DNA from: Bugula neritina
Taxonomy: Eukaryota > Animalia > Bryozoa
DNA: 64,000 nucleotides
Direction of reading: 5' to 3'
Assembly: GCA_964035545.1 (NCBI GenBank)
Contig: OZ037770.1
Span: 9,492,973 to 9,556,972, forward strand
Positions 12,388-62,100 of this stretch are shown here, piece by piece. The notes under the pieces were generated by a model, which saw only the letters and a program-made list of their open reading frames with translations, was not told the DNA's origin and searched no databases. The first letter of the stretch is position 1, and every line of letters starts with the position of its first letter. A program made the translations under genes and the position numbers.

Positions 12388-13420
12388 CACTGAGTTGAAA
12401 ACAACGTGGTTATGAGCATTTAACTATAAGCATTAAAACCAACAGTCAACAAATGTAGGATTTGCCTCAAGTACAACAATGGTATTATTTTGAGCTTGTT
12501 TACATAATGAGGATATGAAATTACTGAGTTGAAAATCAATTTAGTTAACTTTATTTAAAGCATTAAAATTTAAAGCCAATAATGATATTTGATACTAAGT
12601 TGCATTTCTTTTGATTTCATTGTAAAGTCCATGTGCACAGGTGTCTAACTGAAGTCATTTATATAGGCGTATAACCTAAGTCTTGCATTGTTGTTTAATT
12701 GAAGCTATATTATAGTATATAGTATATAGGTATAATAATATATATGACTCATAAAAGCCGCTGCTCTATAACAATTTATAATTGAAGCAGCATATCAATA
12801 AGTTGCTTAATCATTTTAAAATATATAATAATATAAAACGCCCGCCAGCTACTTTATAGTCACCTTCTCTGTGAAAAAAACTTCTAATAAAAAGGTTTTT
12901 TTGTTAAACTGGGCTAAGGACTTATTTAGATGAGGCACAAGAGCAATTATGACTGGATGCTCTTCCTAACATCACCGATGACCTTTGTTCATGTTATACT
13001 TTTCTTTCAAAACTGTTACACACATGAGCTAAATGCACTCATTTTAAAAAAATTGGAACTTTTATAATTTTGAATTTTAAAGGAAAAAATAAAACATGTA
13101 CAGATTACAATTATCAACCTATGCTAACGGTACGACAGACTGGCTCACAGAACTTCTACCAGACTGTATGAACTCCTGTCCATCAATAAACAACTATGTG
13201 CTGGAGATTCACAACACTAATGGCTCTCTCATAGCTATACAATATTTAAATTCAAGTAAGATATATATAATATGGTGCTGTTGTTGCAAGATCTATATAA
13301 ATTGAATAATTTAATGCTAAACAATATATAAGTTTTTATTTATGTTTTGCTCAAGTAAAATAAGTAAGTTGCTTGTTAAAAAAATAATAATTGAACTGTA
13401 CAGTATTACAATTCAGTGTC

Positions 13421-13886: not shown

Positions 13887-14422
13887 AAAACCTTATAAAT
13901 GCAAGTAAGAAATAGTAAACCATCACACTGTTATGTGCAGGACCAAAAGCATAGAAAATAAATATAAAAAGTAGAAAATCAAAATTTGTTTAAATGCCAT
14001 GCTTGAAATATTTGAAAACTTGGTTTCTAAATACAGCGAATCAGTGTTTTTTATTTATGTCTTATTTCAGCTCCATATTTCAAATCTTATAATCTGTGCC
14101 TGGAGAGTTGTTTAAATGGATCTGTGTCGGATGAACAACTTAATTGTATAAAATGTGATGGTGTATGTGAGAAGTCATGTGACTTTGGTTCTACAGTATA
14201 CAATGAATACAACTATATGTCTTTCCAGACAGGATGTACACATATCCTGGGTCATGTGACTCTAGACTTAGGTGATTTTGATGGTATGTCAACCTAAAAA
14301 TAGGTACAATCTACTCATACTTGTAAATGACAAAACTGTAATATATATTTGTAGCGTCGCCACTAACTATAGATGAGTTGTACTGGTGTTGGCTTTCGTA
14401 ACTTTATTTTTACGTATTCCAA

Positions 14423-19619: not shown

Positions 19620-20489
19620 ATGGCCGACGAAGTCATCGACGCGCCCCGACAGGAGCCAGCAGCAATAGAGGAAGATCACATAGGCGGCCCAGCGCTGCCT
19701 ATGGACAGGTACCACTTGCGGGCTCCCACCTTCTCTGGAGAAGAAGATGTAGAGCAATTCATCGCTGAGTTCAGTGATGTGGCGGACATCTGCGGATGGC
19801 CGAACAGGGTTACTCTGATCCAGCTGCGGTTGTGTCTGACAGGGCCGGCTAAACCCTATGGGATAAGCCAGAATGTCGGTGACATATTTGAAGCAATGCG
19901 AGCTAGGTTTGGATTAACCGCTCGAGATGCTCGCGTGCAACTGCAGAGTCTTAGGAGAAATCCTAGGACCAATCTGCGAGAGCACGCTACCGTAGTCGAA
20001 CGACTGGCACAAGTTGCTTACAGCGACTTGCCTGCCGATGGTCGACAGAGCCTAGCACTGGATGCATTCCTCCAGTCTATTAACAACCTCGGTCTTAAAC
20101 AGCATCTGCTGGTGGCCGAAGTTGAGACTATGGAGAGAGCTCTAAGGCTTGGGAATGCCTATTTCCAAGCCGACAGTGCGAGTCGACCTGGCACGACAGT
20201 ACAGCAAATCGGGGCAGACGACGTGTCGACGTCGCCAACGAAGACAGCTGTACAGGTCGCAGCGGCAGCAGCAGACAAATCTAGCTTAACCACGAGCTTG
20301 ATTCGAGAACTGCTCGCCGAGTTCAGGCAACTGCGCCAGCAGGCGACAGCCGAGAGACCCAAGAGGTCGTCGGTAGCTGTCGCCGACAGGCGCGGCCCCG
20401 TATGCTGGGGCTGTGGTAGTGGTGGGCACTTCCTACGGAGTTGCCCCCGCGGCAGTGGGAGGCGGTTAAACAGCGACGGCCCACGGTAA
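19620..20489 (+). CDS. gag: Gypsy 2 Gag with CCHC zinc knuckle
   Basis: Intact 289-aa ORF, CWGCGSGGHFLRSC. Confidence 0.9.
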   Translation: MADEVIDAPRQEPAAIEEDHIGGPALPMDRYHLRAPTFSGEEDVEQFIAEFSDVADICGWPNRVTLIQLRLCLTGPAKPYGISQNVGDIFEAMRARFGLTARDARVQLQSLRRNPRTNLREHATVVERLAQVAYSDLPADGRQSLALDAFLQSINNLGLKQHLLVAEVETMERALRLGNAYFQADSASRPGTTVQQIGADDVSTSPTKTAVQVAAAAADKSSLTTSLIRELLAEFRQLRQQATAERPKRSSVAVADRRGPVCWGCGSGGHFLRSCPRGSGRRLNSDGPR

Positions 20490-23400
20490 CTTCCGCCTAC
20501 CGTGGGCCCCAGTTTAACCCCCCAAGGCAAAGGCTACGGCCCCCACCCTATCGGGTGAGGAGGCCGCCTTCGCCAGAGTGGCAAGCCTCAAGGAGAGTCA
20601 GTCGGCCGCAAGGCCCACCAATACCTCCGGCTTGGGCACTCAAAAACCGCTTTGAAGGTTTGCTTGATGAGGGAGTGAACAACGAATGGGAGCACAACAG
20701 GGATTTTCCTCGGTTGCCCACACGAGCATCAGTCCGAGAATTCACTCGGCCGCCCGTGTGTGAGCGAGACCGAGACGTACCCTGCCCGCCCATGCAATGT
20801 TGACGACCCCCTCGCAACCGAAAAGCACAGGTGCATCCCCAATTCCATCCACATGAGGTGTCGCCTCAAGAGACAAATCGCTCAGTGAGTGCCCAGCCAT
20901 ATGGAAGCAGCTATTTCCTCCCCAGCAAAATTGCTGGTAAAGTTGCCACATTCCTGTTGGATACTGGGTGTACCACAAATCTACTGAGTCGACGTCTCTT
21001 CGACACTCTCAGTGCCAAGGACAGGGCTAGCCTAAAACCATATGAGGGGGAACACGGCACGTTGGCAGACGGGTCGTGTATTTCTTTCTATGGGGGAATC
21101 CAGTTGACTGGTAGAGTCCGTGATCAGATGATCAGTGAGACCTTCATCGTCAGTCAGCTCAAGGAGAATGCCATCTTGGGCATGCCATTTCTGAAGTGAC
21201 ACAGGTGCTACATCGACTTTAGCAAGTCGGCAGTAGTGATGGCGGGGCATGAGCTGGCCTGTGTCGACCGATTTGGCCGACCCTTGGTGAGGGGAGTGCA
21301 GGTGGTACAGCGCTGTACTGTACCTGGGCGCTCCCGGGCTACAGTTCGCTGCAGAGTGAACTGTAGGGAAATCTCCGAGCTCGGAGTGGTGGAAGGTGCA
21401 CCGGGGGGCGTCCAGCTCGCTAACAGTCTGAATAGACTGGATGAGCGGAGGGAGTTCCTGGTCCAGTGCGTAAACCCTTTCACGGAGCCGGTAGAATTAC
21501 CGGCTGGGTCTCTAGTAGGGAAGCTCCATTCCGTGCAAGAGGAGGATGTAGGGCCCGCGCTGGAAACAGCGGGCGGTGCCCGGGGAGTACCCACTAGAGA
21601 CGGCAGGGGGCCGGTGCCTGAACACGTAGCACAGTTGTACGAGGATGCCTGTGATGGCTGCGAGAGCAAGCGAGAACGCCTGGAGATGGCGCGGCTACTC
21701 TCTGAGTACAAGGACGTGTTCAGTTGCGGCGACCATGACATGGGTCTGACTGAGACGGTTCGTCATGAGATACCCCTGGCGGCGGGGACGGTGCCGATTC
21801 GGCAGCCGACCCGCCGGTTAGGTCCTGAGAAGGAGAGAGAAGTGAGCCGTCAGGTGCAAGACCTTCTGAACCGGGACCTGATTGAGCCAGGCCATGGGGC
21901 CTGGAGTTCTCCAGTCGTCCTGGTTCGGAAAAAGGATGGTAGCTGGAGGTTTTGCATTGACTATCGCAGGCTGAACAGCGTGACCATCCAGGACGCTTAC
22001 CCTCTCCCGAAGATCGATGAGTCGCTCGATGCCTTAGCTGGTAGCAAATTCTTCAGCACGTTGGACTTGCTAAGCGGGTATTGGCAGGTGCCCCTGAGTC
22101 CTGAAGCACAGGACAAGGCCGCGTTCATAACGCGGGATGGGCTCTGGAAATGGAAGGTGTTGCCATTCGGACTTACATCCGCACCAGCCACCTTCCAGCG
22201 ACTCATGGAGCAGGTCCTGAGTGGACTGCACTGGAAGACCTTGCTCATATATCTCGATGATGTCATCGTCATCTCCCCCGACTTCGACACACGTCAGTCG
22301 ACTCAGGGAGGTGTTCGACAGACTCCGAGCTGCTAACCTGAAGCTAAAGCCCTCGAAGTGTGCATTACTGCAACGCGAGGTCAAGTACCTGGGCCATGTA
22401 GTTGGTCGAGACGGGGTCGCCACCGACCCCGAGAAGGTACGGGCTGTGAGGGACTGGGCCGTTCCTGTTGACCTCTCTGAATTGCGGGCGTTCCTGGGGC
22501 TGGTAGGGTACTATTGTCAGTACATACCAAGCTTCGCAGGAATTGCACAGCCGTTAAATCGGCTGACCGCAAAGGGGGTGCGATGGCAGTGGACGCAGGT
22601 TGAGCAGAAGGCATTTGACCACCTGAAGGATCGCCTGGTGGAAGCACCCATCTTGGCGTATCCTGACCCTGCGAAGGAGTACATTTTGGATACTGATGCC
22701 AGTAACCATAATGTGGGGGCTGTGCTATCGCAGGTCCAAGATGGTCGCGAGGTGGTGGTGGCTTACTATAGCAAGGCCCTGTCGGCGCCTGAGAAGAACT
22801 ACTGTACAACTAGGAGGGAACTCTTGGCAGTAGTCAAGGCGGTCAAACACTTTAGACCATATCTATATGGGCGCACATTCCGGCTTCAGTCGGATCATGC
22901 GTCCCTGATATGGCTGTGTCGACGGGCAGAACCATCCAGCCAAGTGGCGCGCTGGCTAGAGATCCTGGCAGAGTTTTCTTATCGGATCAAGCATCGACCC
23001 GGTAAGAAACACGGTAATGCAGATGAACTCAGCCGCCGCCAGGCAGATGGGTGTAAGCAATGCCAGAATATCGAGCGCAGGGACAGTGGACCCCCTCGCT
23101 CGGACGTTGAAGCGCAGTTGGGGAAAGCGGGTGTGTACAGCTGGGAAGAAGGGCAACTCCTGTTCGAATCACCCAACAAAGCTGTTAACAACCTTCACGC
23201 AAGCCCCACGTTGCTTCAGAACGTCAGGGAACTATGCCGGCTCCAGTCCACGCTACCAGGAGTGGTAGCTGACCTATTCCGGACCAAGAAAGAGGGACGG
23301 CGGCCGAGTGAGGCCGAACAGCGAGTGAAGAGTACTGAGTTTAAGTACTTCTGTGACCGCTGGGACTCCCTAAGGTTCAACAGCGATGGGCTGCTAACGA

Positions 23401-24976
23401 TCACGTTGGCAGTCGGCACCAATCGCAGTAAACGAGAGAGGGTAGTCTGCCCGTCAGCTCTGCGGCGGGAGTTGATCTGGGACACCCATAAGCAAGCTCA
23501 CGCAGGAGCTAGCCGGGTGATCAGGTGTCTTCAACTCCAGTGGTTTTGGCCCGGTATGACCCGGGATGTCCGACTCCGAGTGCGGAAGTGCGAGGTGTGC
23601 CAAGCTAGCGAGCATGGCTGCCCCACTGAGACCGCAGGGAGGCGTTGCCTCCATGCCGGTCGTCCGTGGCAGGTGGTTGCTGTCGATATGGTAGGCCCCA
23701 TGCCCACTACAGCGAGCGGTAATAACTGGATACTGGTATTAACGGACCATTTCACGCGGTGGGCTGATGCACTGGCTATTCCAGACGCGTCGGCCCCCTC
23801 GGTGGCCAGAGCTTTGGATCAGCAGGTGTTCTGCTATTTCGGCTTGCCGGAGCAGATACACTCTGACCAAGGCGCCCAGTTTCAGTCGCAACTTATGAGC
23901 GATCTCTGTAGAGTGTGGGGGGTAAACCAGAGTCGGACGACCCCGTATCACCCGCAAGGGAACGGGGTCGTGGAGCGGAACAACCGAATGCTAGGGGACT
24001 CTCTGAGAAGCCTGCTTATCGGTAGGAGCCAGGAAGAGTGGGACTTGGTGTTGCCGCAGATCATGCGAGCGTACCGTAGTACCCCTCACTCCAGTACACT
24101 GGAGACCCCTAATTTTCTCATGCTGGGGAGAGAAACGAGGGTTCCTGAGCACGTAACCTATCATGTTCCGACTCCCGAGAGCGATGTCCACGACTACGTG
24201 GACAAGCTCGTAAAACGCATGGGGACGGCTCACGAGGTGCTACGTGAGCAGCAGTGGCAGATCAGGAGTGGTTACTCTGACGACCCACCTTTATACAAGG
24301 TGGGGGACTGGGTCTGGATGACCAGTCATCGCCGCAGGCGCGGACAGGCAGCCAAGTTGCAGCCGAAGTTTGTAGGTTCCTACTGCGTAATTGAGGTAAT
24401 GCCAAATCATACATACAAAGTGGAATGGTCTGGACAAGTGTCGGTCCAGAACGAGGCATGGCTAAAACCTCACTGGGCAAGTCCTGATGCGGCAGGTCAA
24501 GCACCTCCTCTCTTAGAGCCAGCTAGGCGCCCTCTTATGAGAGGGCGACCCATGGCATATCGAGAGATTGAGGAGATACTGCCAGACCAGGACGGGGCGG
24601 CTGATGCGCCAGCCGACCAGCCCCAACCTCCTCCACCCCAGGAAGAGGAGGTCGACACACCTGAAGACCTGTCGGAGCCGGCCCCACCACCTGTGGAGCC
24701 GGTCGACAGGCCCATCGTCCCGGATGAGATGGCAATTCCTCAAAATCATGAGGAAGAGGCAGCTGGGGGGGACCACCCGTACTGGTGGACCGCCCCGTAC
24801 TGGCGAAACCACCCGTGGTGGAAGAATCACCAGTCGTAGCAAATTCCCCAGTGCAGTTGGAGCGTAGCCAACGCACTAGGGCGCCTCCATCTTATTTAAA
24901 AGATATCTTGTGTGATGCAGTGGAAAAACATCCATCAGCTATCATAAAAGAAATCTGGGGGGACGAGCAATTGTGA
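20441..24976 (+). pseudogene. pol: Gypsy 2 pol (-1 frame to gag): PR, RT, RNase H, IN; disrupted
   Basis: FLLDTG, YLDD, DTDAS, integrase core; stops at 20803 and 21199, 2-bp deletion near 22289. Confidence 0.93.
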
Positions 24977-25676
24977 GTTGCCTACCCCAGTGGTGTGACA
25001 CAAAACACCACCGGGGGTAAGAAATGAGCGAAGTCAGCTCGCTAGTGAAAGGGGTATTATACAATCACTTTCACAGCGGAAAGCGTTCTTTTCTGATTCA
25101 ACTGCCAACGTGCACGCATGTACTTGGCAGGCTGGCGCACTACGTAGCCTAAGTGGGCAGCAGACTAAAGTCAGGGCTGTCTTATGGTAAGTCTACTGGT
25201 ATAATTCTATTATTTAAGTAGAATTCAAGCTGGTAGCCTAAATCAGTCTCGCTTTATCATAACGATAAAGTTGATTTCCCAAGTCAGGTGATTCACTGAC
25301 GACTTGAGTGGGGCGGTCGACCACATGATTAATTATTAATCAGTGGTTAGTGATTGCGAGACTCAGTCGAGGTGTCGTACTGACAGGTGCAAACCCCTTC
25401 AACAGTTGTTGGCATTCTGTTGCAGGTGAGACTGGAATGGCGGGGCCAAATTCCTTCTCATGGCATAGCGCAGTCACATCATTCATCTCAACTTTTGGCT
25501 AGATGCTGGCTGCTTGACTAGACTCTTGTAGCGACATGACAGCAGTGCTGATGGCTGTCATAACAGAAGTGCCAGAGACAACTGGCACGTAGCTCCTTCC
25601 TCCCCTCCTCTGGCGATCACGTTCCGGTATAGGCAGAGTAGTTCTTCCCTCTTCTCTCCTGTGGCTACATCCTAAT

Positions 25677-25857
25677 AAGAAGAAGAAGTAATATTAAAGA
25701 GTCCTGCATGAAGTTAAAAAGTAAAAATAGAAGTTAAGAAGAAGTAATATTAAAGATTCCTGCATGAAGTTAAAAATAGAAGTTAAGAAGAAGAAGTAAT
25801 ATTAAAGAGTCCTGCATGAAGTTAAGAAGTTAAAAATAGAAGTTAAGAAAAAGAAGT
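25677..25857. repeat. Tandem repeat, about 3 x 53-60 bp purine-rich unit, in the 3' region of Gypsy 2
   Basis: aagaagaagtaatattaaagagtcctgcatgaagttaaaaa...gaagtt repeated. Confidence 0.85.
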
Positions 25858-28556
25858 CTTCCCTTTCTTCCTTTTGGGAATTCGACGGCGACGAGGTAGA
25901 CGTTGGTAGTGAAGAGACTAGTTAACCCCCCCTCCATCTTCCCCCCTTTGGGGAGATTCCTTCCTCTCTCTCCCCCCTTTGGGAGAGACTCCTTTGCCAC
26001 GCTTGATTCTTCTGGGGACTCATCGATTCCCCCATCGCTTGGCTTCGACTAGACGAGTGTGAAGCAGTACATCTCCTTCTCACTAAGTTCATGCTGCCCT
26101 ACATCATTTGGTGAAGAGACCCCCCCCCCCTACCCTGTGACTGACCCGGATCGATCGTGTACAACATGGACATCGCTTTGAATACATATTTTGTGGTTCT
26201 CTCATTCCTGGTGGTTTTGATCTTTTTGTTTTATTTTACCTTTATTCCTTTTATTATTTTTTTTGAGATTATGTGCATCAATCGTAGAGTGTACTTTTCG
26301 ATAGGTGTGGCGAGTGTGGTAGATTTTAGTGGTTCAAGTATTATTGTATTAATCGAAAAGGTTCACTTCATATTGTTTATTATCTTGTGCGTTCGTTCGA
26401 CACTGTCGGAGTTTAGCTATGGACAGCAGTGGCACCACTAGTAACCACCAATCAAGACAGTCACACTAATTGATAGCAGGTGGAGCTAGCTACTCGTAGT
26501 TGCAGTGCGCTGAGTAGCTAGCCGGCAGAGCAGCTTGGGACTTCATTTAGAACAGTTGTGTATTAAAGCTCACTAATTATGTAATCGTTTTCTATTCATG
26601 CTAGCAGTAAATAACCTTCTTGTATTTGTGTAAATAATAAAGTATCTTATCGTAAACAACCTGTCGCAGTGGCTTTGTTTAAGTAGACCCACACATAATA
26701 ATAGTGAACTGGCAAAATTCACTACAGTATAGCCTATAGACAGGGATTAAAACTTATATTCAATGTTCACTTGAATTAGTAGCTGCATTAGATACTGCAA
26801 GTGTAAAAATAAGGCTTTAACTGCCAATTAGAATACTATCCAGTGACAAACTAATCAATCACTGGAGAGCCTGCCTTAAAAATTTCTAATTTTATGAGAA
26901 ATATGTTATGAAGTAAACACATAGCCATAAATTCTATCATGCACTGACCACACTGGCATTCTAAAAATTGTCAAATTTATAAACATGTTTAATAAACTAA
27001 ATAGTTATTCTTATAGTTAAAATAGATAAAAAAAAACTTAAGGAAAGCTTCAAATTATTACAAATACTGAAGAACAAAACTAACCTGTGTCTCTTTAAGT
27101 TAATTCCAATTTAAACTCACTTGTATTTTATCAATTATATCATTTAAAACTGATGTTATTGATGTGATAAGCTTGCATCGCTAGCGCGCTACTATTCTAC
27201 TAACTGTAGGGTCAACGTCTGCACTCAAACATCCGGGCTGCCTAAGCGTAAAGCCACAGCCAATGAGCGAGAGCGTGCTATTATCTAATTAAGAAATTTA
27301 CAACTAGCAGTCGTTGCGTAGGCGAGAATCACGTGATGCGATAACCTATTTGAGTGGAACGTTATGCTAAACGCAACGCAACGCTGAATGCTAGATTAAC
27401 TATTATGTATTCATCACGCTACATTACTTTTACTGCTTGAATTAATTATGTTCAGGGCTAACTTTACAATATTCTTTGTATTATGATTTAGTCACAACAA
27501 CATTAAAATCCAGCTTATGGCATGAAAATGTCCTGTTTTAACTACATATCTCCGTAATCACTAATCATCAATTGCCATCTTTATTATTGACTGAACTTTT
27601 TAACTAGCTTAAATTAAATAACTCACCAACCAGCAAATGAGTTCTGTTAGCTAGCAGCAATTTTGATATAAACTGGTTTACCAAAACTTTATGCTATACT
27701 AGGAACTTTACACTTTTAGTCTCTACTATTGTGCTTATAGAAATTTCTATCAATAATTTCCCTCCTGGGATTAGAACCGCAGACCTTTGATTTAAAAGCT
27801 GGTGCAACAACTATTACACTACATGGGCTTTAAAGTTCTAAGCAACAAACACCAATATACACATCAAATCAGCTATTTTTTGTAATATTTATTATATAAC
27901 GATTTGTCCTTTAGTATTAATTTTTCTTTAGAGTAACAACTTTGTGTTGGTTTACCAAGTTTGATCTGGCAAAAGCATTAATTTTCGGTAAGATGTGATT
28001 ACAAAAAACTTTTATTGCATTAAGATGAGTTGAAAAATTAATTAAGTTCATGCTTTGAAATTTTTTAGGGAGAAAGTTGCCAAACATAACTCAAACAGTC
28101 CAACAGTCACTGAGTTCTGTTAAAGTGATATCAGGATCTCTCATTATAAAGAGTAACTTTTCTAATGACTCCACATTTCTCAGTGATCTCTTAATGCTAC
28201 AGAATCTACAGTTTATTCTAGGAGTTGGAGACTGGAGAACTCCACAGATCTGTAATAACTCTACAGTAGTGCATTGTGACAGGTAGTTATCTATTATTTG
28301 GCAATCGATTTCTTGGCTGGAGGTGTTGGGTTTGAATTTCAGTGAGGGCAAAGCTATTACAGATACAAAGTTATAAAATTACTTATATTATGATGAACCA
28401 GAATGGTGCCAAAAGTGCATAACTTGCTGCATTTATGTATAGAAAACATGCTTCAATTATGAGCGACGAACAATGTTTTGATAAGCTCAGAGGCTTAGTT
28501 TGACTGAAAAACTGTTTATCATTTTCTGCTCATTTAAGTCAGCCAGTTTCTTGCAT

Positions 28557-29991
28557 ATGGAAGAGGTGTATAGAGATAAACTGACCGCTCCCACCTTTAC
28601 GGGTGTAGAAGATGTAGAGCAATTCATCGAGGAATTCCACGGAGTAGTAGATGTCGCTCAGTGGCCGCCGCGAGTAGCCCTCGTCAAACTGCGGGAGGTA
28701 TTGACGGAGCGAGCTAGACCGTTCAGACAAGGACGGAGCGTGGCGGAGATATTCACTGCACTACGGAGCCGTTTTGGCACCTCCGCCCTGGAAGCCAGGG
28801 CCCGTCTACAAGTGCTACGTCAGGCGGAAGACACACCACTTCGCGACCACGTTGCCCTAGTGAAAAGACTGGCACGGAGCGCGTACAGCGACCTGCCAGA
28901 AACACACCGACGAAACTTTACTCTCATTGACTTTATACAGTCTCGAAAAAATGTGGGTCTCTACCATCAACTACAGGCAAAGGGAGTGACCACCCTAGAA
29001 AGTGCCTTGCAAGTCGGAGAAGACTATCTCCGGGCCGAGCGGCTGTATACGGAGAAAACGGAAGGCACGCGAGTTACTGCGGAGGTCGCCCAGTCACTCG
29101 GAGATAAGATGGGCCGGCTGAGCATCAAATTGAAACAAATGGCAAAGACCCTCACCGACGCCGAACCCCCCAACCGAGGACTCAAGGGAGAGACCTCGAA
29201 GAGGGCTACCCGGTGTGAGAAGCCAGGACCCCCCCCAATCAAGAAGGAGGCCTCGCGGGCCGAGAAAAAAGCAACCACGAGACACGCCCCGTGAGTGGCA
29301 GATACCACGACGAACCAGCCGCCCTAATGGGCAACGGGAACTGTTCTTACTACCAATCACCAACCGCTTTAGCCAGCTACCGGAAACAGGGCTGACCGGC
29401 AAAGTCTCTCGGGACATCGGAGGGGAACCAAACACCCCTCCGCCGAAGAGACGGCACAAGCAGGTCACCAAACGGGCACCACGCCGTTTGAGCGAGGCTA
29501 CACATGCTGGGGAAGTAAGGTTGCAACCACATGGAGAGAGCTACTTCCTACTCGGGAAGGTAGCCGGCCAGGCTGTCACGTTCTTGTTAGACTCCGGTTG
29601 CAACACGAATCTCCTCAGCAGACGAATCTTCGATGCCCTCCCTCCCAAGGCGAGGAAGGAATTAGCTCCCTACACCGGGGAACCTGGCACTCTTGCAGAC
29701 GGGTCGCGTATCCCCTTCTACGGTGTTGTGGAGCTGCCTGGTCGCTTCCGCGACCAGGCCATCCAAACAACCTTTATCCTCAGCCAGCTGAAAGAGGATG
29801 CCATCCTGGGGACGCCGTTGCTAAAACGACACCAATGCCACATCGACTTCCATAAGTCCGCCATACTAATGGCCGGCCGGGAGCTTTCCTGTGTCGATAA
29901 GTTCAGCCGTTCTCTGGTCGGGGGCGTGCAGGTGGTACGTAACTGTACGGTACCAGGCCGTTCCCGAGCGACCATTCACTGCAGAGTGAAT
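28557..29991 (+). mobile_element. Gypsy fragment 3 (gag plus protease only, no LTRs), related to Gypsy 1
   Basis: MEEVYRDKLTAPTFTGVEDVEQF; FLLDSG; ends abruptly after RATIHCRVN. Confidence 0.9.
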
Positions 29992-29992
29992 G

Positions 29993-30185
29993 CACAGCAT
30001 AGTTAAGGTCATCCCCAGCAAAAATTCATCTCATAATCTAGTCTCAGTTCCTGTATGCTAATGCTCTGTGGGCGGCATGCGTATTGCCTACTTGTTATAA
30101 TTTAGCATGAGGTTGAACAATTGCTAACAAACCATCACATTAGCTAGGGCTGCGCCTATCTTTCCATTGCAACCATTATCACTAT
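29993..30185 (+). repeat. Direct duplicate of 53975-54165 (3' flank of gene B); homology resumes at about 34025-34120 vs 54183-54290
   Basis: cacagcatagttaaggtcatccccag...ctgtgggcggcatgcgtattgcctacttgt shared. Confidence 0.8.
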
Positions 30186-41109: not shown

Positions 41110-44100
41110 TTGTTCAAACAATAACATATTACATTAAAATACTCCAAAAGTTGATTGAGTTTCAAATATTTACAATTAAAAAAATACTGACTAAATTTGG
41201 TTAAATATATGCAATAGGTAACTTTACAGTAAGCAGACCAACAGTGTTATAGCCAGTAAGTAGTAATACATTAAATTAAAATTGTTTGTTCCTCAGTAAT
41301 GCAATACAGGCTTCTGTATAGGGGTGGTGTCCGATTTTTAGATAACTGCGTAGCAGCATGTAATGGCAATTGTTGGGGACCACAACTAGATATTTATTGC
41401 CAGAAACTACCAGTACAATGCCATGCTAGCTGTAGTAATGGTTGTTATGGGTCTGGATCTGCAGAATGCTGTTCTTCTTATTGTAATGGTGGATGTAAAG
41501 GACCTAATGGTGCTAGTTGCTACAAGGTCAGTGGCTGAAACTAATAAATGACAGTAAAAAGTACATAATTTAATGCAACATAGTAATTGCTTTTTATAGA
41601 AAAAGTATTGTATGTGTTATACATGGTCTATTAAAAGGAGCTTGCTATAAATATATTATATTATATCTTATTACATTATATGTTATAAATTTATATTATA
41701 TCATATTGCAATAATTATATTATGACAAATTATATTATATAATATTGTATATTATATAATGTTATAATATATCATAATAAATAATATAACTTAGTATACA
41801 ATATAACATATATTATAAGAATAATGTAATGCAGTATAATACAATGTATAGTTATATAATATTATACTATAAAATATTTTACTGTACAACATTATATTAT
41901 ACTATATTATATTATAATGTACTATATTATATTGTATATAGCAATATTTTGCATTATATTATACTATAATAAAATTATAATATAATGTATTATATACTAT
42001 ATTGTATAACTTTTTTTTATTATATATTATACTATATTACAATGTAATAAATTGTTACAAGAAAAGCATTTTAAATAATGATCAAAGACAAGGATATTTC
42101 AATTGTGTAAACATCACCTCATGAGCTGCAGTTAATATAGAAATCAGCTAGCTATTTTAGTGATGTATAGATCATCACTGTAGCTGTAGTATCACAATAT
42201 GATAATAATATATTCAATCAAGACTATATTTAGTTCATGCGTGTTGTATTCCAATAGAGATGTATATTTATAAAGTCTGAATGAAAAGTGAATGCATAAC
42301 AGAAAGTGCTAGGTTTATAATAGTTTAAAATATTAACTTTTTACCGTAGCCAGAATGGCCGGGTATAAGTAATTAACACAATAGAGAAAAGCATAATGTA
42401 GGCAACATGGCTACAAAAATACTATTATAATAAAGCTGTAGTGATTCAACATATTATGCTTTCCATGGTCTTATACAATGTTCTAACAGCTAAGTCACTA
42501 GTGTGCATGGTAAATCAGTATAAAATTAAGATGTGTTATCTATAAACAATATATTGTGTGGATGTAAAATTGATAGGATATTTAATCAATTTTGGTTAGC
42601 CTAAAAAAACTCATGCAAGTTTATAGTCACTATCACTGTGAAAAACTCTTGATGTAAATGTTTTTTGTTAAACTGAGCTAAAAACTCACTTAAATGAGGC
42701 ACAAGAGCAATTATGACAGGATGTTCTTTTTAATATTATCAATGGCCTTTGTTTTTTTACTGCGAAAATCCTAGACCACGGCTTATACACCTATTGTGCT
42801 TAAGTCTACAGAAGAGTGTTTTTGCTCTTTGAAAAATGAATTGCAATAAAAACTGTTGCTTACTTTTGTATCATTGTTTCTAGTATGAAGGGTGCCCTGC
42901 ATACTCTGATGTTAATGGTAGATGTGTTTCCGACTGCAGCTCATCTCAAACTTCTACCAAATATATTCTTTACAAGAAGTTCTGTGTCTCACAATGTCCA
43001 GGTATGCTCCATAGTTTATGTGATTCTATCTAAACTACTATAATAGGTACATTCATAGTTTTACATCAATATATTATGTAATTGCCTCGTGCAACATAAT
43101 ATTATATTATATTATGTTAAATTATATTATATATTATCATTTTGTGATATTATAGTATAATAATTTAGGATGTGTAGTAGCATATTATATTGTGCAATGT
43201 TATATCATAATAAATAATATTATATACTAGTATTGTAGTATATTTAACATTATTTTATTTTAAACTATATTATATTCTAATAAATTATATTATAATATAA
43301 TATTAGATATAATATTGTGAAATAATTGCCACCACTGGGAATCAAGCCCGAGTCCTCTGGCTTGCAAGCAAGTGTGCTACCATTACACCACGGAGCCTAC
43401 TGGGAAACACAACACTACAAATATGATATTATTTTATATTAAATTATAATATATAATACTATATATAATACAATCTTTTTTTATAGCATAATGTATTATA
43501 TCATATTATAATACTATTCTACATTATAATGTATTATCTTATATTATAATATATTAAATTACAATATGTGATTGTTTGAAATAATCGCAGCTGTTCTGTT
43601 CCATGACTGAATTCTTGTTGTAGCCTCAAGTAGAGGACTAAACTACCCTGGTACTACTATTGGAAATAGCTCTTTCTCAGAGAGTAGCTTTCATTCTGAA
43701 AGATGGTGGACAGTTACGTATCCAAGAACTTTTCTTTTTCACTCAGCTATTCTAGTGACTCGGTTTTCCAATAATCAGTCATGCCTAAGTCAAGCATGTC
43801 TAGGTATACCTACCCAGGCGGTCTATAAACTCTCATCACTTCCTATGACTAATTAGCATTATCACATTGCTTCTAAATCATGATTGGGTAAATTTGAAAA
43901 AACTGACAAATTAGAAATTAATTAAATGTTTTCAAATTTTTTTAGCTAATGCTGGGATGAGAGACATGTATTTCTTGACTGACGGTACAAAATGGATCAG
44001 CCCCTCTGCCTCCATTCCAAATACAAATTCTCTCTATTGGCAGTTGTGCAACTACAAAGCCAGAATGATAAATGAAAAATACTTTTTAAGATGTATTTTT

Positions 44101-47100
44101 GGTGAGAAAGAGAGATTAGTGTACAGGTTTGGAATGAGAGGGATCAGAATGAATAGACTACTTGTCTTTCAACAGATTCATATGAATGGAAACAGTAAGT
44201 GGCGGTTTATAAGCTTCAGTTGCTGCGGATAATAAAAAGCTTGGCACACAACTTTTGACATATTGATAAAAATGTCTTGATTTTTATTTGAGTGCTTAAA
44301 AGATAAAACGTTACAAATATAGCAGCTTATTTTGTGTAGTTTTGTAATGCAACTCCTACTATGAAATGCTTTGTTTTTTTAGCCAGATCAAAAGTACAAA
44401 TATCTTCATCTACAGTAAGTCTATTTCCACACCTATTAGATTCAGTCATCATTCCTCAACCACCTATTTCGTATGCTATGCAAAACAGATCACGTTGGTA
44501 TGGAGTTCACGTGGGAAGAGTGATAGAGTTCTCTCATGCAGTGGTATATACCAGACATGGTACAGACTGTCCTGGTGTCACAAACTGCTGTGAGTATCAT
44601 GTCTGTGCTGGTTTACAAGTTACTAAACTTACTTTACTTGTATTTTATGTGAAAACAGTTAAAAAATTGTTATTTGTTAGCCTAAAGTATTTATTGGAAA
44701 GCATTATAAAATATTAAGATTTATTTTATTGCTACAAACAGCTTTAGTCAAATCTCTAAGAGATGTGAGAAGAAAGTGGTGGATTGATTAAATCAGTATA
44801 ATCACACAGTAGGGCATAATTAAATATAATTTATTTCTAGATATTGAGGCAACTACTAAAGTTACAGAAAAAAGCAGCAGTTACAACTAAAAACAAATAG
44901 TATTGTAAATTTTTGTACATATAATGCACGACATCTTCAAATATATTTGCTAGTAATGCAAATGTATTGGCAAATTGTTGATTGCTACCTCAACAGTAAG
45001 CGATATTTGGTGTTACAGTGTAACATCAGTGTATCTGTTGCCTGCAAAAAACCCACAAAATAACTGTTCAATTTTTTCTTGTATAAAACTTTTTCCCTCA
45101 CCAGGATTCCAACTCAGAACCTTATTATAGGCCTGCTAGCAGGTGTGATACTGTTACATTACAAGGGTCATTGAATGAACTTTACATTACGTTTTGATTT
45201 CAGATGAATACTTCAATGGCACATTAGTGAGTATAGGACCATACTATATACCAAGCCATATTCCTAGCAGGCTACCAGTTAATACCTATAGCCCTCAATG
45301 GCAACAGTGTACTTACTTGAGTAAACCCACGTCAAGTCGATACCTAATTGCGGGATGTGACCGTTTGGCACCATATGTTCGCTACCCACACCTACGTCTG
45401 TTAATGTTTGTTAAAATTCAGAGTTCCCAAACTTTTCATCTCACAGAAGTTGAAATATACCAGTTTCAGAGACCTCAATGTGAGTAAACATAGCAACTAC
45501 CAATGGTTTTGTTAAATTATCCTTATCATTTTTGTGAGTTGTCTTCCCTCTTTCACTTCTTTTGTTTGTTCTATACTATACTTTATGTGAGCCAGTTTTT
45601 GGCTGAAGTTTAGTGGTTTTAGAGTTCAGGAGGCACGATTTGCCCAAATATCGGACAATTTCGACAACGGAACTCCGACATTCATCCAAATTTCAGCCGA
45701 ATATCGAACCAACTTTCTGAAAAAATTTTTTGTTAGTATATAAGAGTCAGTCGATTACCAGCGCTTGCCCAAGACACACCAAGAGAAAAATAAAGAGACT
45801 ATTATTTCAAGTTTACAAAACACTTTTATTTGATCAACACTAATAAGCATGCAGATTGCTACATCTAAGTCCTAAATTTACCTAAAAATATTAGTGTACA
45901 GCAGCTCCAAACAAAAAATAGTAACCTATTGCTGAGACTAAAAAATAAAAATGGTATTGCTATTGGTGTTTTACTTCAGTTCCTTATTACAAGCTGGGTA
46001 ATGAGTGTGTAGAGAGCTGTCCAGATGGATTTCTACCAGATGAACAACTCAATTGTATACAATGTAATGGTGTGTGTGAGAAGTCATGTGACTTTGGTTC
46101 TACAGTATACAATGAACACAACTTTATGTCTCTTCCAAATGATTGCACATATATTTCTGGACATGTGATTCTCGACTTCAACAATTTCAATAGTATGTCT
46201 GAGTAAATTGTTATAATATTATACTTACTTGCATATGCATAACAGGATTGTATTATTATTATATTAGTATTATGATAATCTCACATTAGCAGCAACCACT
46301 TTGTTCAAAATTTTAATGACCCGCTTCAACTCTATTTAATTATTTCTCAATTATCATTTATCAATTAAAAATGTGTTTTGTGGAGAGAAAATTGCTATTC
46401 TACCAGTATACTGCATGGTATCAATTTCTTTTTGATAACTAACTAGCATTGTGTTAGTCTGCGTAGACTTTGAGTTTCTATGTAATAAACATTACAATAT
46501 ATTTTAGTTTAAACAACATACTTTTGCCAAAACCTAAATGAAATTAAGCTGCAGTATTTGTAATGATCTATTAAAAATGATTATGATGTATAAATTGTCA
46601 TAGCAATAATAATATCTATATACACGTACAGCTGCAATATTCATGAGATAACACCAAAAAATTGTAATAATAACACCAACCTTTATGTACATGTAGCTTG
46701 TACATCAAGTTCTTTGCAGTAACTTATTCTTGGTATTCAGTTTGCACTTTGAATTATTAATTTCTTTAAATGGTATTTTGATAGTCAAAAGAAGTTTATG
46801 AATTTAGCTTTGCTCTGCTTCTTATTTTTTCTTTTTTGCAAGTCCGAATATCTACTAAAATATAAATTTGAAAACAACTATTTATAGTTATAAGTATATG
46901 TAGAACTTTTTTTGCATTAAGGTGAGCTTAAAGTATAATGTCTTTGTGCTTTAAATTATAGCAACACACTGGAGAAATATAAGTCAAAGACTGTCTCATT
47001 CATTAAGCTCAATTAAAGTGATTTCAGGATCTCTGGTTATAAAGAGCAAATTCTCTCGTAACTCTGAATTTCTCACTGATCTCTCAATGCTACGGAACTT

Positions 47101-55617: not shown

Positions 55618-56116
55618 GTAGGCCGCATGAGCTCTCTGTAATCATTATGATGGCTACAATGCAGCGCAGCTCTACCGTGTTCAGCCAAGCAAGCAGACTA
55701 AGCAAGATGTAAAATTTTTATTAAAATCAGTGTATAAAATACATGTTTACACCAATTCTATTGAGGTTATTTGAAAACTTCAAAAAGCCTCTAATAGCAA
55801 ATATCTTATAACCCTATATTTCAATTTTTGCAGATATGTGTTGCTTGGGAATTGAATAATTTGTGGGGCATTGAGACCATGTTTTTTTATGCAAAAATGG
55901 GCGATTTTTGGAGCATAAAAATGCAACAGGTTGGGTAGGTAAAGATTTTAAAAAGCCTCTAATAGAGCAGCAAAATATTGACAAGATGGTTTTTGAATTT
56001 TGATTCCAGCCTCAAAATTAGTCGAGTTATGAGTGGGGCACTGTTTCATATATAATTATAATGGAGCAATGAAATTACTGATTCAGTAGAAGGATGACCT
56101 TAATCAAGCTGTGTAT

Positions 56117-59100
56117 TTTGCTAGATTTTAGTGGTGCAATCATTATTGTATTAATCGAAAAGGTTCACTTTATATTGTGTATTATCTTGTGAGTTCGACA
56201 CTGTCGGAGTGTACCTATGGACAGCAGTGGCACCACTAGTAACCACCAATCAGGTCAGTCACACTAATTGATAGCCGGCAGAGCAGCTTGGGACTTCATC
56301 TAGAGTAGTTGTGTATTAAAGCTCACTAATTATGTAATCGTTTTCTATTCATGCTAGCAGTAAATAACCTTCTTGTATTTGTGTAAATAATAAAGTATCT
56401 TATCGTAAACAACCTGGTGCAGTGGCTTTGATTAAGTAGACCCACATATAATAATAGTTAACTGGCAAAATTCACTACACTGGTGGCAGCGGTGGGATTC
56501 CACTTAATACAAATGCCCCTAGCCAGGGAGTAAGATGGCCGACAAAGTCGTCGACGCGCCCCGACAGGAGCCAGCAGCAATAGAGGAAGATCACATAGGC
56601 GGCCCAGCGCTGCCTATGGACAGGTACCACTTGCGGGCTCCCATCTTCTCAGGAGAAGAAGATGTGGAGCAATTCATCACTGAGTTCAGTGATGTGGCGG
56701 ACATCTGCGGATGGCCGAACAGGGTTACTCTGATCCAGCTGCGGTTGTGTCTGACAGGGCCGGCTAAACCCTATGGGATAAGCCAAAATGTCGGTGACAT
56801 AGTTGAAGCAATACGAGCTAGGTTTGGATTAACCGCTCGAGATGCTCGCGTGCAACTGCAGAGTCTTAGGAGAAATCCTAAGACCAATATGCGAGAGCAC
56901 GCCACCGTAGTCGAATGACTGGCACAAGTTGCTTACAGCGACTTGCCTGCCGACGGTCGACAGAGCCTGGCACTGGATGCATTCCTCCAGTCTATTAACA
57001 ACCTCGGTCTGAAACAGCATCTGCTGGTGGCCGAAGTTGAGACTATGGAGAGAGCTCTAAGACTTTGGAATGCCTATTTCCAAGCCGACAGTGCAAGTCG
57101 ACCTGGTGCGACAGTACAGCAGGTCGAGGCAGACGACGTGTCGACGTCGCCAGCGAAGACAGCTGTACAGGTCGCAGCGGCAGCAGCAGACGAATCTAGC
57201 TTAACCACGAGCTTGATTCGAGAACTGCTAGCCGAGATCAGGCAACTGCGCCAGCAGGCGACAGCCGAGAGACCCAAGAGGTCGTCGGTAGCTGTCGACG
57301 ACAGGTGCGGCCCCGTATGCTGGGGCTGTGGTAGTGGTGGGCACTTCCTGCAAAGTTGCCCCCGCGGCAGTGGGAGGCGGTTAAACAGCGATGGCCCACG
57401 GTAACTTCCGCCTACCGTGGGCCCCAGTTTAACCCCCCAAGGCAGAGGCTACGGCCCCCACCCCACCGGGTGAGGAGGCCGCCTTCGCCAGAGTGGCAAG
57501 CCCCAAGGAGAGTGAGTCGGCGGCAAGGCCCACCAATACCTCCGGCTTGGGCACTCGAAAACCGCTTTGAAGGTTTGCTTGATGAGGGAGTGAACGACGA
57601 ATGGGAGCACAACAGGGATTTTCCTCGATTGCCCACACGAGCATCAGTCCGAGAATTCACTCAGCCGCCCGTGTGTGAGCGAGACCGAGACGTACCCTGC
57701 CCGCCCATGCAACGTCGACGACCCCCTCGCAACCGAAAAGCACAGGTGCATCCCCAACTCCATGCACATGAGGTGTCGCCTCAAGAGACAAATCGCTCAG
57801 TGAGCGCTCAGCCAAATGGAAGCAGCTATTTCCTCCCCGGCAAAATTGCTGGTAAAGCTGCTACATTCCTGTTGGATACTGGGTGCACCACAAACCTACT
57901 GAGTAGACGTCTCTTCGACACTCTCAGTGCCAGGGACAGGGCTAGCCTAGAACCATATGAAGGGGAGCACGGCACGTTGGCGGACGGGTCGTGTATTCCT
58001 TTCTATGGGGTAATCTAGTTGACTGGTAGAGTCCGTGATCAGATGATCAGTGAGACCTTCATCGTCAGTCAACTCAAGGAGGATGCCATCTTGGGCATGC
58101 CATTTCTGAAACGACACAGGTGCTACATAGACTTTAGCAAGTCGGCAGTAGTGATGGCGGAGCGTGAGCTGGCCTGTGTCGACCGATTTGACCGACCCTT
58201 GGTGAGGGGAGTGCAGGTGGTACAGCGCTGTACTGTACCTGGGCACTCCCGGGCTACAGTTCGCTGCAGAGTGAACTGTAGGGAAATCTCTGAGCTCGGA
58301 GTGGTGGAAGGTACACTGGGGGGCGTCCAGCTCGCTAACAGTCTGAATAGACTGGATGAGCGGGGGGAGTTCCTGGTGCAGTGCGTAAACCCTTTCGCAG
58401 AGCCGATAGAATTACCGGCTGGGTCTCTAGTAGGGAAGTTCCACTCCGTGCAGGAGGAGGATGTAGGGCCCGCGCTGGAAACGGCGGACGACGCCCGGGG
58501 AGTACCCACTAGAGACGGCAGGGGGCCGGTGCCTGAACACGTAGCAGAGTTGTACGAGGATGCCTTTGATGGCTGTGAGAGCAAGCGAGAATGCCTGGAG
58601 ATGGCGCGGCTACTCTCTGAGTACAAGGACGTGTTTAGTTGCGGCGACCATGACATGGGTCTGACTGAGACTGTCTGTCATGAGATACCCCTGGCGGCGG
58701 GGACGGTGCCGATTCGGCAGCCGACCCGCCGGTTAGGTCCTGAGAAGGAGAGAGAAGTGAGCCGTCAGGTGCAAGACCTTCTGAACCGGGACCTGATTGA
58801 GCCAGGCCATGGGGCCTGGAGTTCTCCAGTCGTCTTGGTTCGGAAAAAGGATGGTAGCTGGAGGTTTTGCGTTGACTATCGCAGGCTGAACAGCGTGACC
58901 ATCCAGGACGCTTACCCTCTCCCGAGGATCGATGAGTCGCTCGATGCCTTAGCTGGTAGCAAGTTCTTCAGCACGTTGGACTTGCTAAGCGGGTATTGGC
59001 AGGTGCCCCTGAGCCCTGAAGCACAGGACAAGGCCGCGTTTATAACGCGGGATGGGCTCTGGAAATGGAAGGTGTTGCCATTCGGACTTACGTCCGCACC

Positions 59101-62100
59101 AGCCACCTTCCAGCGAATCATGGAGCAGGTCCTGAGTGGACTGCACTGGAAGATCTTGCTCATCTATCTCGATGATGTCATCGTCATCTCCCCCGACTTT
59201 GACAGACATGTCAGTCGACTCAGGGAGGTGTTCGACAGACTCCGAGCTGCTAGCCTGAAGCTAAAACCCTCGAAGTGTGCATTACTGCAACGCGAGGTCA
59301 AGTACCTGGGCCACGTAGTTGGTCGAGACGGGGTCGCCACCGACCCCGAGATGGTACGGGTCGTGAGCGACTGGGCCGTTCCTGTCGACCTCTCTGAATT
59401 GCGGGCGTTCCTGGGGCTGGTAGGGTACTATCGTCAGTACATACCAGACTTTGCAGGAATTGCACAGCCGTTAAATCGGCTGACCGCAAAGGGGGTGCGA
59501 TGGCAGTGGACGCAGGCTGAGCAGAAGACATTGGACCACCTGAAGGATCGCCTGGTGGAAGCACCCATCTTGGCGTATCCTGACCCTGCGAAGGAGTACA
59601 TTTTGGATACTGATGGCAGTAACCATAATGTGGGGGCTGTGCTATCGCAGGTCCAAGATAGTCGCGAGGTGGTTGTGGCTTACTATAGCAAGGCCCTGTC
59701 GGCGCCTGAGAAGAACTACTGTACAACCAGGAGGGAACTCTTGGCAGTAGTCAAGGCGGTCAAACACTTTAGACCATATCTATATTGGCGCACATTCCGG
59801 CTTCGGACGGATCATGCGTCTTTGATATGGCTGTGTCGACGGGCAGAACCATCAAGCCAAGTGGCGCGCTGGCTAGAGATCCTGGCAGAGTTTTCTTATC
59901 GGATCGAACATTGACCCGGTAAGAAACACGGTAATGCAGATGGACTCAGCCGCCGCCAGGCAGATGGGTGTAAGCAATACCAGAATATCGAGCGCAGGGA
60001 TGGTGGACCCCCTCGCTTAGACATCAAAGCGCAGTTGGGGAAAGCGGGTGTTTACAGCTGGGAAGAAAGAGCAACTCCTGTCCGAATCGCCCAACAAAGC
60101 TGTTAACAACCTTCACGCAAACCCCACGTTGCTTCAGAACGTCAGGGAGCTATGTCGGCTCCAGTCTACGCTACCAGGAGTGGTAGCTGACCTAGTTCGG
60201 GCCAAGAAGGAGGGACGGCGGCCGAGTGAGGCCGAACAGCGAGTGAAGAGTACTGAGTTTAAGTACTTCTGTGACCGCTAGGACTCCCTCAGGTTCAACA
60301 GCGATGGGCTGCTAACGATCACGTTGCAGCCAAAGTTCGTAGGTTCCTACTGCGTAATTGAGGTGATGCCAAACCATACATACAAAGTGGAATGGTCTGG
60401 ACAAGTGTCGGTCCAGAACGAGGCACGGCTAAAACCTCACTGGGCAAGTCCTGATGCGGCAGGTCAAGCACCTCCTCTCTTGGAGCCAGCTAGGCGCCCT
60501 CCTATGAGGGGGCGACCCATGGCATATTGAGAGATTGAGGAGATACTGCCAGACCAGGACGGGGCGGCTGATGCGTCTGCCGACCAGCCCCAACCTCCTC
60601 CACCCCAGGAAGAGGAGGTCGACACACCTGAAGATGTGTCAGAGCCGGCCCCACCACCTGTGGAGCCGGTCGACAGGCCCATCGTCCCGGATGAGATGGC
60701 AATTCCTCAAAATCATGAGGAAGAGGCAGCTGGGGGCGGACCACCCGTACTGGTAGACCCCCCGTACTGGCGACACCACCCGTGGTGGAAGAGTCACCAG
60801 TCGTAGCAAACTCCCCAGTGCAGTTGGAGCGTGGGCAACGCACTAGGGCGCCTCCATCTTATTTAAAAGATTTCTTGTGTGATGCAGTGGAAAAACATCC
60901 ATCAGCTATCATAAAAGAAATCTGGGGGGACGAGCAATTGAGAGTTGCATTTCCAAGGTATAAGGAGACGCAATAGTGAGTTGCCTACCCCAGTGGTGTG
61001 ACACAAAACACCACCGGGGGTAAGAAAAGAGCGAAGTCAGCTCGCTAGTGAAAGGGGTATTATACAATCACTTTCACTGCGAAAAGCGTTCTTTTCTGAT
61101 TCAACTGCCAACGTGCACGCATGTACTTGGCAGGCTGGCGCATTACGTAGCCTAAGTGGGCAGCAGACTAAAGTCAGGGCTGTCTTATGGTAAGTCTACT
61201 AGTATAATTCTATTACTTAAGTAGAATTCAAGCTGGTAGCCTAAATCAGTCTCGCTTTATCATAACGATAAAGTTGATTTCCCAAGTCAGGTGATTCACT
61301 GACGGCTTGAGTAGGGCAGTCGGCCACATGATTATTATTAATCAGTGGTTAGTAGATTGCGAGACTCGGTCGAGGTGTCGTACTGACAGGTGCAAACCCC
61401 TTCAACAGTTTGGCATTCTGTTGCGGGTGAGACTGCAAGGTTGAGGAACTAGAAGATAGATCCTACCGTCACGCAGCCACCCCCCTCCCCTCCGACCGTA
61501 GAAGAAGAAGAGTACCCGTGGCCCGATTAACCGACACACTAGCCTCGACCAGTTCCTGTCGACGGATGTAAAGAAGCTACAGTGACGTATGGCTCGTCTC
61601 TGCAAAGAACAGGAACAGGTGGCTGCTGAAGTGACTAAACTACAGACGACTAGCAAAGTAACCTGACGACCCGACTTCCCCATACCCCTCTGACTGGTAG
61701 CAACTGGTACTTATTATTCGTGGAGGTGATGTAAATAGATTGTGTGTGTGTCGGAACTCTTGTGACTAACGAGTAGGATACTGATTTTATATTATACTGT
61801 TTTTTTGTCATGTGTTATATTCTTTTCTTAATTGTGTATTAGTTAGAGAGTGTACCTTTCAATAGGTGAGGAGAGTGTAATGGATTTTAGATTATGTTAT
61901 TATCGAAAGGATAACTCTTTGTGGCTTACTGTCTATACGCTTGGCATAATGGCTATAAGTACTGGAGATCAATTATCATAATAGCTGACAATTGGAATGC
62001 GTACAATCTGCTGGACAATTATTGCTAGCTACTAATGCACGCAGTTAAACAAGGCAGGACTAGTTAAATAGAATCAACAACTGTACGCAGAATAGACAGT

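Follow-up and report, generated by a model that had tools for sequence, protein, structure and literature searches.

F-type lectin domains (FTLDs) are defined by a fucose motif, HX24RXDX4(R/K), and a cation motif, h2DGx (PMC5712786). Among the tandem FTLD proteins described so far, the bindin of the oyster (Crassostrea) has its domains split midway by an intron that is a site of recombination, alternative splicing alters the number of its repeats, and some of these repeats are devoid of the His-Arg-Arg triad (PMC5712786). As for the receptors of the EGFR type, the novel glycine of the human variant EGFRvIII arises from the split codon at EGFR exon 8, on the fusion of exon 1 with exon 8 (PMC2959087). 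Here, we analyse a locus in which these two families meet, within a 64,000-nucleotide stretch of DNA (the window) from the bryozoan Bugula neritina (assembly GCA_964035545.1, contig OZ037770.1, positions 9,492,973 to 9,556,972 of the forward strand). The window holds an EGFR-like gene, gene B, whose furin-like cysteine-rich domain is interrupted by four exons, numbered 7 to 10. We estimate at about 85% the probability that these exons, judged from their sequences, are two tandem degenerate FTLDs drawn from the FTLD family of this genome and inserted into an ancient phase-1 intron of the first cysteine-rich region (CR1) of an EGFR-type receptor.

The module exons and their probable lectin ancestry

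Positions 42600-46400 of the window were read and translated, which gave the following features, all in window coordinates:

Exon 6, 42884-43001, plus strand: codes for a stretch of the furin-like Cys-rich domain and closes with CVSQCP plus one base (G/gtatgc), a phase-1 donor.
Intron 6, 43002-43623, plus strand: a short interspersed repeat lies within it, at about 43328-43438.
Exon 7, 43624-43803, plus strand: 180 nt, phase 1-1; N-terminal half of module 1 (WWTVTY...LVTR...C..C loop).
Exon 8, 43946-44194, plus strand: 249 nt, phase 1-1; C-terminal half of module 1 (W.LC.Y...YFLRC...IHMNG).
Exon 9, 44383-44589, plus strand: 207 nt, phase 1-1; N-terminal half of module 2 (LLDS...RWYGVHV...YTRHGTDCPGVTNC).
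Exon 10, 45204-45479, plus strand: 276 nt, phase 1-1; C-terminal half of module 2 (W.QCTY...RYLIAGCD...HLTEVEIYQF).
Exon 11, 45980-46192, plus strand: two bases, then PYYKLGNECVESCP...CIQCNGVCEKSC; here the furin-like domain continues (PYYKLGNECVESCP...CEKSC), and then the second L domain begins.

All 8/8 inner boundaries are AG/GT, and exons 7-10, each a multiple of three, add up to 912 nt (180+249+207+276), or 304 codons, of which 143 form module 1 (exons 7 and 8) and 161 form module 2 (exons 9 and 10), lengths that fit the FTLD domain length of about 140 residues. The first-pass annotation had described four phase 1-1 exons of 304 codons encoding two tandem modules, which direct reading and translation confirmed, and had regarded the cassettes as skippable in frame, which follows from the exon phases: by arithmetic, the reading frame is kept if exons 7-10, 7-8 or 9-10 are left out, and in-frame skipping of the module exons is therefore possible in gene B, which would give the isoforms with 0, 1 or 2 modules that the annotation proposed. 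The two modules are also related to each other, half by half and beyond chance, with tblastn cross-matches between exons 8 and 10 at E 0.002-0.05 and an hhalign probability of 71% (E 3.7e-5) for module 1 against module 2.

The queries submitted to Pfam, the PDB, the ESM Atlas and AlphaFold2 were single exons or half-domain alignments, and the halves were joined for profile-profile comparison, alignment and tree. The ESM Atlas returned no usable look-alikes for exons 10 and 9, the products of exons 9 and 10 co-folded as two separate chains scored 0.00, which speaks neither for nor against the fold, and RNase HII, the lone PDB match of the half-domain profiles (E 1.4), was discarded as a chance match. 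The reference FTLD family of the genome was found with the Pfam profile PF22633, which has at least 150 exon matches genome-wide and 0 in the module loci. When a profile of the N-halves of these FTLDs was compared with the PDB, the top match was FBP32 (3CQO, 7e-16), followed by Sm-hPAF, SpX-1 (2J1R) and the eel agglutinin (1K12); since these top matches are solved fucolectins, the domains found with PF22633 are true FTLDs.

Against this reference, the N-half (exon 7/9-type) profile of the modules aligned with the FTLD N-halves at an hhalign probability of 93% (E 3.5e-7) and the C-half profile with the FTLD C-halves at 50% (E 1.7e-4); both alignments are in register, the latter to the domain end, and extend to the exon ends. 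The joined modules of seven genes, compared with seven FTLDs, reached 93.3% and a score of 47.6, against 12.4±3.1 (maximum 22.6) for column-shuffled profiles. With all modules and 22 FTLDs the comparison rose to 97.2-97.9% (E 3e-11 to 4e-13, score 69-81, about 120-133 columns), one run giving 97.7%, E 1.4e-12 and a score of 77.9 over 118 columns; 60 column-shuffled controls scored 11.0±2.6 (maximum 21.4) and a reversed profile 11.5, placing the match about 20 standard deviations above the shuffled controls. In the full-length alignment, modules and FTLDs have a common skeleton made of WW.V, the Arg of 'NR', two Cys residues 15-16 positions apart in the C-half and an L.L.EVEVY end, and the C-x14/15-C of all modules falls on the LC.Y...ITC pair seen in the genome FTLDs, which we take to be Cys108-Cys124 of the eel lectin. 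One paralog, gene D, has a module 1 that can be recognised by itself (hhalign probability 97.8%, E 6.6e-13; 2.9e-11 by hmmsearch), its N-half giving a sub-threshold match to PF22633 and keeping N.A...AVDG.

The exon structure of the two families agrees as well. The genome FTLDs are encoded by two phase 1-1 exons each, as read codon by codon in L014, L016 and L021. The intron that splits the domains of the L014 type falls in the loop after 'NR...C..C', at a distance of six codons from the strand motif that follows. The two modules of gene B are split in the same loop, likewise by a phase-1 intron, at seven codons from the following strand motif.

The binding motifs of the family, in turn, are lost from gene B. 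At the column of the fucose-binding His, module 1 has E and module 2 has Y; of the other motif residues, the first Arg is retained (TR), and the acidic +2 and basic +7 residues are absent from both modules; the absence of a conserved His..RxD..R triad from either module, noted at first sight of the sequence, held on the full alignment. Module 1 has a deletion in the place of the cation motif, and module 2 has a degenerate LLDS there; some paralogs still have the motif, namely as AVDG in module 1 of gene D, as LNDG in its module 2, and as VIDG in module 2 of L012. The modules are thus best described, from their aligned sequences, as putatively FTLD-derived and not canonical fucose binders.

Several observations weigh against an FTLD ancestry or against the gene structure on which it is built. 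No Pfam family was matched at E <= 10 by any of exons 7-10 submitted singly, and no fitting chain was found among the PDB sequences with the half-domain module profiles. Taken one by one, the modules of gene B reach an hhalign probability of 17-33% at most against the FTLD profile, a weak recognition that explains the blank standard searches, so that the call as FTLD rests on family profiles. The AlphaFold2 model of the exon 10 half, built with its alignment, had a predicted local distance difference test score of 43.9 and consisted of strands only, with no helices, for a half domain alone. There is no clear nearest donor subfamily among the FTLDs by blastp or hhalign, pairwise identity being 25% or less, and in the wider FTLD set, from which exons were extracted at phase-1 sites only, the phase is to be read as 'consistent with' phase 1. 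Finally, the exon calls for gene B are DNA-based, the sole public run that holds the stretch being made up of DNA contigs that span the introns and have no splice joints.

These weaknesses give some room to an alternative in which the modules are another galactose-binding-like jellyroll (discoidin/F5-8C, CBM32-type or the like), or else a beta-rich domain of a new kind, whose likeness to FTLDs is a motif-level convergence. PF22633 is itself named 'NedA-like galactose-binding domain' in Pfam, the genome FTLD exons also score on PF00754, and such a jellyroll would suit the weak recognition of the single modules of gene B and the absence from them of the fucose triad and the calcium motif. Nevertheless, we hold this alternative to be highly unlikely, given a profile match that runs over 118-139 columns to the domain end some 20 standard deviations above shuffled controls, the fact that the best solved relatives of the reference FTLDs are all fucolectins, a mid-domain intron equal in phase and loop to that of the FTLDs, and a paralog, gene D, whose module 1 retains the N-terminal motifs of FTLDs, including AVDG. 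The F-type lectin ancestry proposed by the first-pass annotation is thereby supported on three sides, by the controlled profile-profile match to the FTLDs of the genome, by module 1 of gene D and by the common mid-domain phase-1 intron.

The expansion of FTLDs in this genome is very large, with dense tandem arrays and several subfamilies, for example at C3:7.6-8.1 Mb, C5:0.46-0.52 Mb, C6:10.7-14.3 Mb and C8:5.1-5.5 Mb. About 2 kb upstream of gene D (L031:1916-4041, equal to C2:30796916-30799041), a PAN/apple-like Cys-rich exon is followed by a canonical two-exon FTLD; these exons may be a separate gene or the 5' part of gene D.

A constrained family of paralogs

The search of the 216 Mb assembly identified exactly seven genes with homologs of exons 6, 8 and 10, five of them on contig C6 (three near-identical) and two on contig C2. 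Exons 6-11 occur in identical order and phases in 7/7 of these genes, and the amino-acid identity of the other six to gene B is 37-100%. In another cluster, also on C2 (30.57-30.68 Mb), eight further genes have both modules just upstream of an exon-11 homolog, L026 being the one whose exon structure was read, and gene D (C2, 30.80 Mb) also carries both modules, so that the two-module insert is present in at least 16 genes. The ratio of nonsynonymous to synonymous divergence (dN/dS) over the module exons was 0.24-0.44 in five paralog pairs, the synonymous divergence (dS) of a sixth pair being saturated and giving no ratio, and these values indicate that exons 7-10 are coding and under constraint. 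Among 1.84 billion representative proteins, exon 10 had two real matches, each derived from Bugula-type DNA: a 100-residue genomic open reading frame and KAF6016741.1, a deposited gene model of Bugula neritina that is 81-88% identical to the contig 2 (C2) paralog over its two longer aligned pieces and joins the equivalents of exons 9, 10 and 11.

This constraint bears on a second alternative, namely that exons 7-10 are optional cassettes or decaying pseudo-exons that rarely enter the mRNA, the usual protein being an uninterrupted EGFR-like ectodomain. Since every exon is in phase 1-1, any skip would be in frame, and in oyster bindin the number of FTLDs does vary through alternative splicing (PMC5712786). 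However, at least 16 paralogs, some at no more than about 20-40% identity, have retained the open frames and the AG/GT sites. Given this, the dN/dS of 0.24-0.44 and the joining of exon 9, 10 and 11 equivalents in KAF6016741.1, we hold it to be highly unlikely, too, that the modules usually go unused.

The tree of modules and FTLDs gives an indication of the age of the two-module state. The first modules of the seven genes form a clade (98/95), and so do the second modules (100/99), from which it follows that the two-module state is older than the seven-gene family. The sampled FTLDs fall on one side of a single branch (86/81), an arrangement compatible with a single origin of the modules in a tree that is unrooted and in which the modules of L026 and gene D sit on long branches of unreliable placement.

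The divergence between paralogs is uneven from exon to exon. Between gene B and L010 (C6:9411001-9421000), dS is 0.12 in exon 9, 0.35-0.66 in exons 6 and 11 and 1.46 in exon 8, and is saturated in exons 7 and 10; likewise, exon 9 is 85% identical, against 51-62% for the flanking module exons. This mosaic suggests exon-scale gene conversion or exchange between paralogs. Positive selection was considered for the divergent module exons and rejected, given that dN/dS is below 1 everywhere and that the pattern follows dS, which points to the mosaic history. In the neighbouring paralog, gene A (L009, C6:9481001-9491000), the internal intron of module 2 measures about 3.5 kb (oriented 1438-4973) against 0.6 kb in gene B, the excess being a recent insertion into the mid-domain intron of a copy otherwise 98-99% identical.

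The recipient intron and the proposed insertion

Gene B has the layout of an EGFR/ErbB ectodomain, that is, an L domain, a furin-like domain, a second L domain and a domain IV. Single exons gave a Pfam Furin-like match above the cut-off at 41275-41535 (28.9 bits), a match of exon 11 to positions 113-147 of the same profile (E 0.0013) and, further downstream, Recep_L at 21.5 bits (cut-off 21.8) and a weak GF_recep_IV. A cytoplasmic tyrosine kinase was not found in gene B, in which the membrane-span exon is followed by a Lys-rich open frame of 239 residues up to the stop, with no Pfam match. Two genes elsewhere in the genome (L029+L052 on C5 and L028+L054 on C4) are canonical EGFR genes, with the kinase motifs GSGAFGTV, HRDLAARN and DFGLA.

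In both canonical EGFRs a phase-1 intron lies straight after C..DCP or C..KCP, the two introns measuring about 470 and 180 bp with no exons inside, and the next exon starts with (H/M)FLE(N/H)KGGCVK.CP. The equivalent phase-1 intron of an EGFR-like paralog, L030, is also empty, at about 500 bp. Codon-by-codon reading places the phase-1 intron after C-x3-C-P of CR1 in gene B, L026, L028, L029 and L030, and the Furin-like matches of the whole genome start at profile position 107-110, which makes this exon border a family-wide one. We take this intron to be the exon 7/8 border of human EGFR, the 3' edge of EGFRvIII, the sequences read codon by codon at this position being those of the bryozoan genes; the disulfide Cys271-Cys283 of human EGFR presumably spans the insertion junction.

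Symmetric module exons are thus found in a recipient phase-1 intron that is intact in relatives, and the combination of an old phase-1 intron with phase 1-1 exons is the classical signature of exon shuffling. The first-pass annotation had placed the insertion in the EGFR exon 7/8-equivalent intron, a position borne out by the empty phase-1 intron after C..(D/K/Q)CP in two kinase-bearing EGFRs and one EGFR-like paralog, and its proposal of symmetric exon shuffling into an ancestral intron gains support from the phases of the modules together with the same empty intron in the canonical EGFRs and L030. An alternative history, in which an ancestral EGFR-like gene already had the modules and the canonical EGFRs and L030 lost them, is barely credible, for, although the tree is not rootable and L030 could be a secondary loss, four exons would have had to drop out cleanly, with the frame exactly preserved, from both canonical EGFRs of the bryozoan, and again from vertebrate EGFR, which has an ordinary intron at this junction (exon 7/8; for the codon of the exon 1/8 fusion, see PMC2959087).

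Under the insertion that we favour, a four-exon cassette of two domains, or one domain that was later duplicated, would have entered the phase-1 intron after C-x3-C-P in CR1 (domain II), the frame being kept because all phases are 1. Going by the human disulfide map, the insert of about 300 residues would be enclosed by a single small disulfide loop in the CR1 rod. In the F-type fold the N and C termini are adjacent (PMC5712786), and each module could for that reason stand out from the rod and leave it unbroken. The predicted product is a pair of lectin folds mounted on the side of a kinase-less, membrane-anchored scaffold, their classical sugar and calcium sites gone. The ligand would be a protein or a non-classical glycan, and not fucose bound in the classical manner, cell-surface recognition would be the most likely role, and signalling, if any, would have to proceed through partners, as there is no kinase.

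It is conceivable, but in our opinion unlikely, that the half-domain exons also work as a combinatorial kit, in which gene conversion and/or alternative splicing would give chimeric or variable-number lectin heads on the kinase-less EGFR scaffold. Such heads could arise because all eight boundaries are in phase 1 and single exons seem to be exchanged between paralogs (dS of 0.12 in exon 9 versus at least 1.5 in its neighbours). If such a kit existed, it might serve polymorphic self/non-self or gamete recognition in colonial bryozoans, as a membrane-anchored analogue of oyster bindin.

The genome contains 34 exon-11-like exons, some of them about 3.5 kb apart on C6, a spacing that fits repeated half-receptor 'stalk' units. 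The window itself holds pieces of a third receptor-type gene without modules (13066-13260, 14073-14282 and 28083-28283, plus strand), in which an exon-11-like exon comes after a membrane-proximal-type exon and not after exon 6. Another locus, L027 (C1:13278001-13283000), is an insulin-receptor-type gene with L-domain and furin-like parts, distinct from the EGFR-type genes.

As for the repeats of the window, the one in intron 6 (43328-43438) has a contig depth of 62716, versus about 270 alongside, in the DNA run X1, and a tRNA-like piece resembling it lies in reverse orientation in intron 9, at about 45090-45175. The intron 6 repeat looks tRNA-derived by eye, but a tRNA gene was rejected, as ARAGORN calls none. 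GC-rich blocks (50-59% GC against a background of 29-35%) occur at about 2000-8000, 20000-26000, 28000-30000 and 56000-62000, and an open frame at 29215-30006 resembles a gag-protease piece of a retroelement; these blocks are probably long terminal repeat retrotransposons that have inserted both within the receptor genes and between them.

Comparison with known systems

In the literature searches, neither an FTLD nested within a furin-like Cys-rich domain nor a link of F-type lectins to Bugula or to EGFR-type receptors was found. All the pieces are present in a single genome: a donor FTLD family whose domains have the two-exon structure of the modules, canonical EGFRs with an empty recipient intron, derived genes in which this intron is filled, and a graded series that goes from a still-recognisable FTLD in gene D to domains missed by standard searches. 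Degenerate lectin folds of this kind escape the domain databases unless lineage-specific profiles are built. The genes also make up a candidate family of recognition receptors in the bryozoans, on whose molecular immunology and allorecognition hardly any data exist for the whole phylum.

The sperm bindin of the oyster is like the bryozoan modules in being a lophotrochozoan tandem of FTLDs with a mid-domain intron; the exons of the modules are also all symmetric and show an exon-wise mosaic divergence. Bindin, however, is a soluble acrosomal protein made up of FTLDs only, whereas the bryozoan modules are nested within another domain of a membrane receptor. The domain of about 140 residues and the WW.VDL / NR / L.L.EVEV skeleton are also those of MsaFBP32 (3CQO) and the eel agglutinin (1K12), and the former, a binary tandem F-type lectin, likewise has two non-identical domains in tandem; the modules differ in being without the fucose motif and, in gene B, without h2DGx as well, and were missed by Pfam and PDB sequence searches. 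Another parallel is the association of FTLDs with unrelated domains in membrane or adhesion proteins, with the basic triad replaced, as reported for Drosophila furrowed/CG9095 and the Xenopus pentraxin-FTLD fusions (PMC5712786), although there the FTLDs stand end to end with the other domains and are not nested in them. On the side of the receptor, gene B has in common with EGFR/ErbB the layout of L1, furin-like CR1, L2 and CR2 and the phase-1 intron after C-x3-C-P, but EGFR/ErbB has a kinase and an unbroken CR1, and the bryozoan family has at least 16 members, some of them with repeated half-receptor units. Both protein families, as well as class 1-1 exon shuffling as a mechanism, are textbook matters; what the literature searches did not turn up is the layout itself, a putative lectin-fold pair nested inside a small disulfide loop of the Cys-rich rod of an EGFR, in a kinase-less family of at least 16 genes.

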